This document shows, in pieces, positions 50,918-53,000 of a stretch of 64,000 nt of DNA. Where the stretch lies: assembly GCF_000007005.1 (NCBI RefSeq), contig NC_002754.1. The stretch is one strand, 5' to 3'. This DNA is from Saccharolobus solfataricus P2. Its GTDB lineage: Archaea; Thermoproteota; Thermoprotei_A; Sulfolobales; Sulfolobaceae. Every line of letters starts with the position of its first letter. The first letter of the stretch is position 1. The position numbers and the translations under genes were made by a program. The notes under the pieces were generated by a model. The model made no database searches. It had not been told where the DNA came from and saw nothing but the letters and a program-made list of their open reading frames with translations.

Positions 50918-51043
50918 GATTCCCTCAAAATATTACGTATTTTTAGGTAATTATAAAAGTTGTGATATTATAAACCCTTATTAAAGTTAATATAATTAAA
51001 TTGTAATAATCATATCTACAGTATCTAATACTTTTGCATAAAA
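50918..51043. repeat. 126-bp perfect inverted repeat, copy 1
   Basis: Base-by-base reverse complement of 52875-53000. Confidence 0.97.
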
Positions 51044-51343
51044 GTCAGGGAAACAGCCTATCTTTGCTTCCTCTATTAGTTTATCAGCTAAATTTCTCAT
51101 GTATACGCATTGATCACAGGCTTGCAAATATATACCCCTTTCCCTACTAAGTTTACCTAATCTTTCGGCTAAGGGATTATCTTTCATTAGAATATAGACA
51201 TTATCGTGTATAAAGAACATTCCAATAACTTCAGCGTTGTGTCTGTTTTCCTCCAACTGCGGTACTACCATCTGTCCTAAAATATAAGAACCCAAATTGG
51301 ATTCAACTATATAGGCAATTTTCTTAACCATTGCTGACACCAT
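50996..51343 (-). CDS. DsrE/SaoD-like protein
   Basis: GMFFIHDNVY, ACDQC (CxxC) and GCFPDFY. Confidence 0.75.
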   Translation of the reverse strand: MVSAMVKKIAYIVESNLGSYILGQMVVPQLEENRHNAEVIGMFFIHDNVYILMKDNPLAERLGKLSRERGIYLQACDQCVYMRNLADKLIEEAKIGCFPDFYAKVLDTVDMIITI

Positions 51344-51725
51344 TTATAAATTTCTCAACAACTTCATTCACTATCTGGTTAGTTGTAAATCCCTTGATTT
51401 GACGTAGTTTTTCCATGGAGTTATCTCTATTTATTTTTCCCTCATTTTCAATATATCTCTCACAAAGTGCTTCTAAGGTTATTATGAGTAGTGGACATTC
51501 AGAACTTTCATAATATATTTTCCCATCTTGAGCCCTATAGAGTGTGAACCACCTAGAATTATCTATTCTAAAATAGCCCAATTTTTTGGCATTTATCTTC
51601 TTCTTATAGCTAAATAACCTTTTCATTAGAAAGTCTGAAGCGTATTTCCTATTAACTATGCAACCACATTCATCCTTAAGCTCCATAATGGGAAATACAC
51701 GCTTAGTCCAAATAAATTTTTGCAA
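51324..51725 (-). CDS. Hypothetical protein (Cys-containing)
   Basis: Operon-embedded 133-aa ORF with ECGC, ECP and LCE. Confidence 0.65.
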   Translation of the reverse strand: MQKFIWTKRVFPIMELKDECGCIVNRKYASDFLMKRLFSYKKKINAKKLGYFRIDNSRWFTLYRAQDGKIYYESSECPLLIITLEALCERYIENEGKINRDNSMEKLRQIKGFTTNQIVNEVVEKFINGVSNG

Positions 51726-51729
51726 ATAG

Positions 51730-52704
51730 TCAATCTAACGATAAATACATGACATTTGTTTCTCCAGCTAACTTCTTTAAATATTCTAATGCTTGGTAAT
51801 CTAATAAGGTTTCATTTTCAGTGTCAATCCTAGCACATACCATTTTGTTACTCTTAATCAGTCCAGTAAATAGCCATCCCCTACCTAAAGGTGCTGATGA
51901 AACTAGGCAAATGTCTTTTTCACAATGAAATCTATAATTCTTAAAATCATTAACTTTTTCAACTTTATGGAATTTCACGAAATATGTATATAAAAACGAC
52001 ATGAATTTCTTATCCCTAATTAGTTCTCTAATCCTAGCCTCGTTGAATTCCTTAATGACCTTAACGTATTCATCAGTGTTAATCGTATTACTTAAAACTA
52101 AAATCCTAAAAGATACGTAGTCTTCATATTTTAGGACCTCATATCTACAGTTAAATAACTTAATTATTTCTGGGATAGTGTGAGCTACTGCAGCTGGATT
52201 ATCAGTTAAAGCTTCTATTATTTCTCCCCTATTAGCCTTCATCAATTCTCTCTTTAACGTTATTTCAGGAACTGGGCACTCTTCTCCTCTAAGATCTACT
52301 ACTTTATCTGGCTTAAGAGTAGAAATTCTAAGATTATTTTCAACTTTTTGCTTTCCTATTAAATATTTTGAATATTCTTCTAAATTTTTCCTTATTGAAT
52401 TTGCTATACTACTTAGGAGTTTTTCGAGAATTCCTCTGTAACTTATTTTTACGTTTATTCTCTCTTTGCTTTCCTTCTGGAACGTTATATTTATTATGAA
52501 TCTTCCATTCTTTTCTATTATATCAAGGCCATCCTTTCTCGGCTTGCATATACATTCTACTTTTAGTCTGAATATGGTGAGGTAACAAATATACCCAAAA
52601 TCTAGCTTTTTTATATTTGATAATTTATATAACTTATACGAGTTTTCAAGGTCTAACAATGACTTGAAATCTTCAGCGTAAATCAGTGTAGTTTCCTCTA
52701 TCAT
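51730..52704 (-). CDS. Three-domain protein with a central TusA domain
   Basis: [17 protein letters not shown] at about residues 135-200; unassigned N- and C-terminal domains. Confidence 0.8.
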   Translation of the reverse strand: MIEETTLIYAEDFKSLLDLENSYKLYKLSNIKKLDFGYICYLTIFRLKVECICKPRKDGLDIIEKNGRFIINITFQKESKERINVKISYRGILEKLLSSIANSIRKNLEEYSKYLIGKQKVENNLRISTLKPDKVVDLRGEECPVPEITLKRELMKANRGEIIEALTDNPAAVAHTIPEIIKLFNCRYEVLKYEDYVSFRILVLSNTINTDEYVKVIKEFNEARIRELIRDKKFMSFLYTYFVKFHKVEKVNDFKNYRFHCEKDICLVSSAPLGRGWLFTGLIKSNKMVCARIDTENETLLDYQALEYLKKLAGETNVMYLSLD

Positions 52705-52874
52705 TGTTTAAAATGATGTTAATTCTATTTAAAAAACTTATCTTCAGCATTTAGCGCATAACTGAATTTAATTTTAAGAATAAAAAGTCTATTCTTATGA
52801 TATAACAATAAGAAAAATGTTGATGAAGAATTTTCTTAGTCAACTAATTTATTTTGGTTCAAGGGTTTTCTTAA

Positions 52875-53000
52875 TTTTATGCAAAAGTATTAGATACTGT
52901 AGATATGATTATTACAATTTAATTATATTAACTTTAATAAGGGTTTATAATATCACAACTTTTATAATTACCTAAAAATACGTAATATTTTGAGGGAATC
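52875..53000. repeat. 126-bp perfect inverted repeat, copy 2 (dsrE-like 3' end plus promoter/leader)
   Basis: Encodes FYAKVLDTVDMIITI-stop, two TTTATAAT boxes (52944-51, 52961-68) and a GAGGGA leader. Confidence 0.97.

Follow-up and report, generated by a model that had tools for sequence, protein, structure and literature searches.

A 126-nt Inverted Repeat Encloses a Three-Gene Cassette Found in Both Orientations in Saccharolobus solfataricus and Its Relatives

Introduction

Inversions whose staggered breaks leave inverted duplications at the breakpoints have been described for Drosophila, and to our knowledge this type of duplication has not been described for a prokaryotic operon junction. 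In Archaea, an integrase of Thermococcus nautili produces inversions between identical segments of at least 104 bp (Cossu et al., 2017, as summarized in PMC8371274). Long-read surveys report a few archaeal invertons, which are said to be "minimally investigated." Here we analyze a 64-kb stretch of the Saccharolobus solfataricus P2 chromosome (the window), in which a perfect 126-nt inverted repeat encloses a cassette of three co-directional genes between a tusA-YeeE operon and an operon that begins with a beta-propeller gene and ends with DoxD. We think it probable that the repeat is an old inverted duplication homogenized by gene conversion, and that the cassette has been flipped repeatedly by homologous recombination that does not depend on a dedicated recombinase. 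In the literature on S. islandicus and S. solfataricus we found no description of this inversion, only of large ones.

Results

The Repeat and the Segment It Encloses

Window position x corresponds to AE006641.1 position x + 2,790,000 (AE006641.1 2,790,001-2,854,000; G+C 35.5%), and the two are 100% identical over the 12,975 nt compared. The two arms are exact reverse complements at 126/126 positions, and identity ends precisely at their four boundary coordinates. A general repeat search gives the pair as 134 nt with 98% identity, a figure in which chance matches at the ends are counted in. The features of the repeat and the segment between the arms are as follows.

50918-51043, minus strand: left arm, holding the 3' end of the DsrE-like gene (15 codons plus stop), a pair of TATA-like boxes, and the Shine-Dalgarno-like GAGGGA
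52875-53000, plus strand: right arm, reverse-complementary to the left arm at every position
52875-52922, plus strand: orphan copy (48 nt) of the last 15 codons of the DsrE-like gene, FYAKVLDTVDMIITI, with the stop, in the right arm
52944-52951 and 52961-52968, plus strand: a pair of TTTATAAT boxes at a distance of 17 nt, with minus-strand counterparts at 50967-50974 and 50950-50957
52992-52997, plus strand: GAGGGA, a Shine-Dalgarno-like leader, mirrored at 50921-50926 (minus strand)
51044-52874, minus strand: flipping segment, 1831 nt, with three co-directional genes and the upstream region U
52705-52874, no strand: region U, 170 nt of unique sequence that separate cassette gene 1 from the right arm

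The left arm ends 3 nt before the GTG start of tusA (50914), and the right arm ends 2 nt before the ATG start of the propeller gene (53003). The orphan 48 nt are non-coding in the P2 orientation and become the real gene end once the segment is flipped. The TTTATAAT boxes are putative archaeal TATA boxes, to which we attribute a promoter function from their sequence. A 28-nt promoter core occurs twice in the window when up to three mismatches are allowed, as compared to no occurrences in 100 shuffles, and no 16-mer of the arms has a further copy elsewhere in the window. An Rfam scan of positions 50000-54000 matched no RNA family. A scan for sigma-70 promoters and intrinsic terminators was also run; its model is bacterial and inapplicable to an archaeon, and the result was set aside.

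The original prediction, made from the window's letters, had described a perfect 126-bp inverted duplication of a promoter, with identical DNA upstream of both outer operons. The coordinates and the identity are exact. The 15 codons and stop, the two boxes, and the GAGGGA 2-3 nt before the starts are each found as described, the arm with its TATA-like boxes and leader (a putative promoter) is present in two copies, and the same 126 nt precede each start codon in either orientation.

Both Orientations Occur Among Relatives

We compared 25 full loci from finished genomes, drafts, and metagenome contigs. The cassette lies as in P2 in nine of them and is flipped in the other 16.

As in P2 (9): AE006641.1, CP033235.1, CP001404.1, CP003928.1, JBRCUT010000046.1, and the drafts AHJP, AHJQ, AHJL, and AHJK
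Flipped (16): CP001401.1, CP001399.1, CP001403.1, CP194013.1, LT549890.1, CP160827.2, AHJS, AHJT, five JGI contigs, and three MEGAHIT k141 contigs

A sixth JGI contig, Ga0081529_121962 (L026 and L031), is flipped as well. Finished genomes occur in both states (AE006641.1, CP003928.1, and CP001404.1 as in P2; CP001401.1, CP001399.1, CP001403.1, and LT549890.1 flipped), and the drafts of the AHJK-AHJT accession series disagree in orientation among themselves. The exact 115-aa DsrE-like protein is followed by tusA in some contigs and by the propeller gene in others. The cassette had been predicted to be invertible, with the DsrE-like open reading frame (ORF) intact either way, and this is what the relatives contain: the same protein is encoded in both arrangements, and no single orientation is fixed (9 vs. 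16).

A maximum-likelihood tree was made from 5351 columns of the tusA flank, the interior, and the propeller flank, with the arms left out and the LT549890 lineage as root. Orientation has to change five times on this tree, and at least three of the changes are forced by well-supported branches. Smaller data sets gave three and four changes. Both orientations are found within the P2-like clade and within the clade of drafts with AHJ accessions. We take the P2-type clade to include North American S. islandicus genomes and the other to be Kamchatkan S. islandicus.

The strongest competitor to repeated flipping is that one or two old inversions took place and that homologous gene flow then spread both alleles in S. 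islandicus and S. solfataricus. These populations are known to recombine, and many inner branches of the tree are unresolved. However, linked differences should travel with an old inverted allele that moves between strains, and not one of the 99 in-group columns that vary follows orientation; there is no linked SNP (single-nucleotide polymorphism) in 5.3 kb. Between the closest genomes of opposite orientation there are only 2-3 substitutions in 5351 nt, a count that takes in the cassette interior and the DNA just outside the arms, and both orientations exist in two clades that differ by ~1%. We regard old inversions spread by gene flow as unlikely. The lack of linked differences argues for repeated and recent flips, and these comparisons show that the cassette has flipped repeatedly. 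The orientation switch that had been proposed is thus seen as at least 3-5 changes on the tree. A recent rearrangement had been proposed too, and this holds for the single flips but not for the duplication itself, which is older than the split between the LT549890-type and P2/S. islandicus-type lineages (~10% DNA divergence).

The Arms Evolve in Concert

In the P2-type and S. islandicus-type clades, every full-length locus has both arms, each identical to that of P2. More distant relatives also possess the repeat. LT549890.1 and CP160827.2 are ~90% identical to P2 in the flanks and interior, and a unitig (L023) is 88.5% identical to P2. In LT549890.1 and CP160827.2, the inner 117 nt have five substitutions relative to P2, and each of them occurs in both arms; of the five that LT549890.1 shares between its arms, three fall in the tail of the DsrE-like gene, and the non-coding orphan copy has them too. 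The two arms of LT549890.1 differ from each other at three positions, all in the outermost 9 nt (GAGGGAGTC vs. GGGGAAATC) in the region of the GAGGGA leader, and they differ from the P2 arms at 6-7 positions. The L023 unitig has two substitutions common to both ends within the 30 nt visible at each.

With ~10% divergence in the flanks, roughly a dozen differences would be expected between arms that evolve independently. The observed numbers are zero in P2 and three in LT549890.1. The arms are more alike than flank divergence predicts; this is gene conversion, which keeps them identical, with weaker homogenization at the outer edge. Decay limited to the edge is what homology-dependent exchange predicts. 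Ongoing gene conversion, one of the interpretations in the original prediction, agrees well with five substitutions common to both arms in so diverged a lineage.

Homologous Recombination as the Likely Mechanism

A Pfam scan covered most window ORFs of at least 140 aa and some shorter ones. In the ORFs scanned, no domain of a tyrosine or serine recombinase turned up, so that the predicted absence of an adjacent site-specific invertase extends, for these ORFs, to the whole window. The only mobile-element genes among them are two insertion sequence (IS) transposases, 21 and 29 kb from the repeat.

21643-22542: DDE_Tnp_1 transposase (Pfam)
28966-30033: IS110-family transposase (Pfam)

The DDE_Tnp_1 gene sits between an ATPase gene (19610-21463) and permease genes (22735 onward) of an oligopeptide-type ATP-binding cassette (ABC) transporter cluster.

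Three observations lead us to infer that the cassette flips by general homologous recombination between the arms: the arms are long and perfect, they evolve in concert, and the scanned ORFs of the window include no recombinase. Under programmed phase variation, the cassette would instead be flipped as a regulated switch by a tyrosine or serine recombinase that acts on sites in the arms and whose gene lies elsewhere in the genome or on an integrated element. Such a switch would account for the existence of both orientations and for recurring flips; archaeal integrases can invert DNA, as in Thermococcus between identical segments of at least 104 bp (PMC8371274), and long-read surveys do report a few archaeal invertons. 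Invertases, however, typically use short, imperfect sites (about 10-30 bp), whereas the arms are 126 nt and perfect. The concerted evolution over 117 nt with decay only at the edge is a pattern that homology-driven exchange predicts, the promoter lies inside the arms so that a flip turns nothing off, and no recombinase gene was found in the scanned ORFs of the window. We give a regulated, recombinase-driven switch little credence.

The Repeat and the Orientations Are Not Assembly Products

Short-read graphs cannot resolve a repeat of this kind, and one could suppose that all strains are really in one orientation and that the differences were made by assemblers. A Logan k = 31 unitig found in at least 20 sequencing runs spans 51014-52904, i.e., the interior plus k-1 = 30 nt of each arm. 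A unitig that ends 30 nt into each arm is what a perfect inverted repeat produces in a de Bruijn graph. Several metagenome contigs likewise end within or at the outer edge of an arm. Against a common artefact stand the finished genomes in both states, the AHJK-AHJT drafts that differ from each other, and the outgroups described below, which show the flipped order without a repeat that could mislead an assembler. Three MEGAHIT k141 contigs also span the arms; as k = 141 exceeds the 126-nt arm, each of their junctions is backed by single k-mers that cover the arm from end to end. A common artefact in the orientations is, in our judgment, very improbable. The repeat itself is genuine. The possibility, raised with the original prediction, that one copy was an assembly artefact is refuted: both arms recur in 24 further loci from independent assemblies, and the read-derived unitig fits a perfect inverted repeat.

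Some Logan k = 31 contigs (L003, L004, L046, and L035-L037) cross an arm into the flank, which is unexpected for a perfect 126-nt repeat. Three such contigs start inside region U, at 52748, 52705, and ~52737, and run downward; their starts are 127-170 nt short of the other arm. These contigs could reflect low coverage of the AT-rich region U, graph simplification, or strains without one arm. L003 begins exactly at ~52748, where P2 and CP033235.1 have one base fewer (ATGC) than all other genomes (ATGGC), an intergenic difference.

P2 has several families of MITEs (miniature transposable elements with inverted repeats) of roughly the 126-nt size of the arms, and MITEs have been noted in S. islandicus (PMC3718332). 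The arms as two MITE insertions can nevertheless be rejected with near certainty: there are only two copies in 64 kb, metagenome contigs match at this locus only, the arm holds the last 15 codons of a gene and is homologous over its full length to a single-copy gene end and intergenic region at the same place in the outgroups, and a reading of the arm by eye turned up neither terminal inverted repeats nor target duplications. A collection of species-representative genomes had no match to the 324-aa cassette protein or to a 29-nt promoter core, but it seems to omit or mask this species group and is weak evidence on copy number.

Origin of the Duplication

Four outgroup lineages were available (L018, L019/L020, L021/L022, and L028). 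The first three encode homologues of the 324-aa cassette protein with 58-63% identity; L028, which came from a DNA scan, belongs to the same outgroup grade at ~68% DNA identity. None of the four has an inverted repeat of the arm type. Their gene order is tusA, pointing outward, and then in the opposite direction the 324-aa gene, a ~118-aa gene, the DsrE-like gene, the propeller gene, the membrane protein gene, and DoxD, i.e., the flipped order. The part of this order that includes tusA comes from L019/L020 and L021/L022, as the L018 and L028 contigs stop before tusA (a second count in the analysis has three lineages reaching it). With the outgroups in the flipped order, the P2 gene order is derived.

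The junction between the DsrE-like and propeller genes is a single sequence in the outgroups and aligns with the arm over its whole length. Its core, AAGGGTTTATAA(T/A)ATCACAACTTTTATAA, is identical or at most one base off in three of the four. Upstream of outgroup tusA the sequence is a different one, in which a separate TATA-like box and a GGTGA leader are found. The arm homologue is found only at the propeller side in the outgroups, which makes the propeller-side copy the original and the tusA-side copy derived. By this comparison, the tusA-side arm appears to have displaced tusA's own promoter.

The inner boundary of the arm is the same in the P2, LT549890.1, and L023 lineages, and no similarity was found beyond it (the score was equalled by 59-70% of shuffles). 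A shared boundary with nothing similar beyond it argues for a single origin. The idea that the arms are the remnant of a longer duplication was dropped because similarity does not continue past the inner boundary. As judged from these lineages, the duplication is old and predates the LT549890-type vs. P2/S. islandicus-type split.

We propose that in an ancestor of the S. solfataricus/S. islandicus group 126 nt were copied, inverted, to a position directly before the tusA start codon. The copied stretch would have comprised the last 48 nt of the DsrE-like gene, the intergenic promoter, and the ribosome-binding leader. The simplest single event would be a cassette inversion whose staggered break enclosed the 126 nt, and this would yield the P2 order and the inverted duplication together. 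The two staggered breaks would have flanked the 126 nt, each on a different strand, and a third would have cut the DNA at the tusA start codon. The ancestral order would have come back through later recombination, with the repeat still in place. The first ~45 nt of region U, the cassette's own TATA region, are conserved in the outgroups. Region U of the LT549890 lineage has a collinear, weak match to the L019 tusA leader (equalled by 18 of 1000 shuffles), and the match of P2 region U to the outgroup tusA leader is not significant. The distal part of region U may be a relic of the ancestral tusA leader.

In one outgroup lineage a second TusA paralogue of 81 aa lies between tusA and the cassette (L021 3267-3512; L022 1062-1307), which indicates that the tusA side has been remodelled more than once.

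Genes of the Cassette and the Outer Operons

The genes inside and beside the repeat are as follows.

51730-52704, minus strand: cassette gene 1, 324 aa, with a central TusA domain at residues 134-201 (Pfam TusA, 4.9e-15)
51324-51686, minus strand: cassette gene 2, 120 aa; the mechanical ORF from a TTG at 51725 has 133 aa
50996-51343, minus strand: cassette gene 3, 115-aa DsrE-like protein, with its last 48 nt in the left arm (Pfam DsrE, 3.8e-5)
48796-50914, minus strand: left outer operon, with tusA, a YeeE/YedE-type transporter, a 95-aa protein, and a DsrE2-like protein
50666-50914, minus strand: tusA (Pfam TusA, 2.3e-19)
49433-50662, minus strand: YeeE/YedE-type sulfur transporter, 409 aa (Pfam Sulf_transp, 1.9e-55; partial NCBIfam TsuA/YedE matches)
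49155-49442, minus strand: 95-aa protein, from the ORF map
48796-49158, minus strand: DsrE2-like protein, 120 aa (Pfam DsrE)
53003-55666, plus strand: right outer operon, with the propeller, membrane protein, and DoxD genes
53003-54223, plus strand: beta-propeller, 406 aa; homologues are named YncE family by NCBI
54234 or 54180 to 55145, plus strand: membrane protein, between the propeller and DoxD genes
55130-55666, plus strand: DoxD-family quinol oxidase subunit (DoxD family match)

The solid family assignments are TusA, Sulf_transp (YeeE/YedE type), DsrE, and DoxD. Homologues of the 324-aa protein are found in Sulfolobaceae at 36-99% identity, and cassette gene 2 had no match to any family searched. 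The 115-aa protein is SaoD/DsrE-related, with a score of 131 bits against NCBIfam NF040732, below the curated cut-off of 169.

An IS with a 321-aa DDE_Tnp_1 transposase lies inside the cassette of LT549890.1 (L032 4955-5920) and CP160827.2 (L033), between the TusA-domain gene and the ~120-aa gene, and the TusA-domain gene is called as 336 instead of 324 aa. The IS is absent from the L023 unitig, which has a TusA-domain protein of 91% identity and shares its two visible arm substitutions with LT549890.1. The cassette apparently tolerates disruption. On the propeller side, the membrane protein (54180-55145) is called as 321, 303, or 272 aa across genomes (L008, L012, and L042), and the flank has a 2-nt gap in AHJP and a 1-nt gap in AHJS. 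The length differences may mean that some Kamchatkan strains have a frameshift here or begin the gene at an alternative start.

Beyond each outer operon lies a gene for an HTH_10 regulator (46233-46898 and 59348-60010, both plus strand); the two are paralogues with 38% identity (E 2e-52), and a gene at 26852-27589 (plus strand) is listed alongside this pair. Each flank of the locus also has an ABC-ATPase and membrane-protein pair. The HTH_10 pair is a candidate regulator of the shared promoter, or a candidate trace of an older, larger duplication. Farther away, the 3.6 kb from 41300 to 44900 hold only short ORFs, including a PIN-domain protein (43113-43517, E 1e-22), and are possibly a toxin-antitoxin remnant or a degraded region.

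Discussion

What a Flip Changes

The cassette and both arms form a symmetric unit of 2083 nt. Owing to this symmetry, a flip leaves everything unchanged except the junctions that lie 2-3 nt upstream of the two start codons. Every ORF is intact in both states, and each outer operon keeps the same 126 nt upstream. Judged from the sequence alone, orientation does not switch any gene on or off. What does change is the operon that lies co-directionally downstream of the cassette: tusA-YeeE in P2 and propeller-DoxD in the ancestral order. The other outer operon adjoins region U and is divergent from the cassette promoter. No obvious T-rich terminator between the cassette and the downstream operon was noticed on reading the sequence, and the co-directional operon would be able to receive read-through from the cassette. 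Any effect of a flip on expression would be quantitative, and the polymorphism may be neutral. Through the arms, the tusA-YeeE sulfur-uptake operon and the propeller-DoxD operon likely share one promoter and one regulator.

A more far-reaching, and in our view doubtful, idea is that the flip is a selected switch of operon partners that needs no recombinase, with the identical arms as interchangeable ports of promoter and leader. If it were true, a flip would re-assign cassette read-through between an import operon (tusA-YeeE-DsrE2) and a membrane oxidation operon (propeller-DoxD), and the dosage of the partner of the TusA-domain/DsrE-like sulfur relay would shift with the read-through. Gene conversion and selection would then maintain the arms, and populations would hedge between two sulfur-handling states.

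Several points weigh against our overall interpretation of an old, homogenized repeat with repeated flips. S. islandicus recombines freely, and some of the apparently independent flips could be transfers of an already flipped allele. The orientations come from public assemblies, in which short-read assemblers can mis-orient a 126-nt repeat; this is tempered by the finished genomes in both states and by the k141 contigs, which are flipped. The orientations were compared between strains, and flips may seldom occur over the span of laboratory culture. The arms' promoter activity and the read-through of cassette transcription are both read from the DNA, homologous recombination is deduced from the pattern of the arms and flips, with a recombinase encoded elsewhere and acting in trans as a possible agent, and the staggered-break origin leans on the weak similarity in region U.

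Significance

In Sulfolobales with good genetics (S. islandicus and S. solfataricus), the locus offers a natural reporter for exchange over ~100 bp of homology, both homologous recombination and gene conversion. Flipping rate, dependence on homology length, and conversion tracts would be measurable at an unmodified chromosomal locus. It would also be a case of promoter capture, in which the ancestral promoter of tusA was replaced by an exact copy of the putative promoter and leader of the propeller operon. This capture probably couples the YeeE/TusA sulfur-uptake operon and the DoxD-type operon to one regulator. For genome comparison, short-read assemblies will orient this 2-kb segment arbitrarily or break it, and synteny differences here are real polymorphism rather than error. 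The locus adds a small chromosomal inversion polymorphism in Archaea, where such elements have barely been surveyed.

Comparison With Known Systems

The inversions of Thermococcus nautili resemble this locus in that they are archaeal and use short identical segments of ~100 bp. They are large and chromosomal and depend on a plasmid integrase, whereas here 1.8 kb are inverted and no such gene was found among the scanned ORFs of the window. Staggered-break inversions in Drosophila are like the P2 arrangement as compared to the outgroups: a breakpoint sequence that is single copy in the ancestral arrangement is found at both ends, inverted, in the derived one. Unlike in Drosophila, the duplicate here supplies tusA with a putative promoter and leader, and the duplication then served as the substrate for repeated re-inversion.

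Invertons such as E. coli fimS, Salmonella hin, and the invertible promoters of Bacteroides also consist of a short segment in inverted repeats, near promoters, with both orientations in close relatives. In contrast to these, the P2 locus has no recombinase gene nearby that we could find, its repeats are both long and perfect and, rather than the flipping segment, hold the promoter, there is no ON/OFF state, and three whole genes flip. Flip-flop isomerization, known from plastid inverted repeats and from inverted rRNA operons or IS copies of bacteria and archaea, shares the long identical inverted repeats, the presence of both isomers, and the concerted evolution of the arms via gene conversion, and needs no dedicated recombinase. 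Its repeats and interiors range from kilobases to megabases, whereas the arms here are 126 nt with a 1.8-kb interior, and they consist of a gene tail, promoter, and 5' leader for two operons instead of a mobile element or rRNA operon. The locus behaves like flip-flop isomerization and lacks two hallmarks of invertons, a nearby recombinase and short sites. Its unusual traits are arms that would act as a putative promoter and leader common to two operons, and a duplication that appears to have captured a new promoter for tusA.

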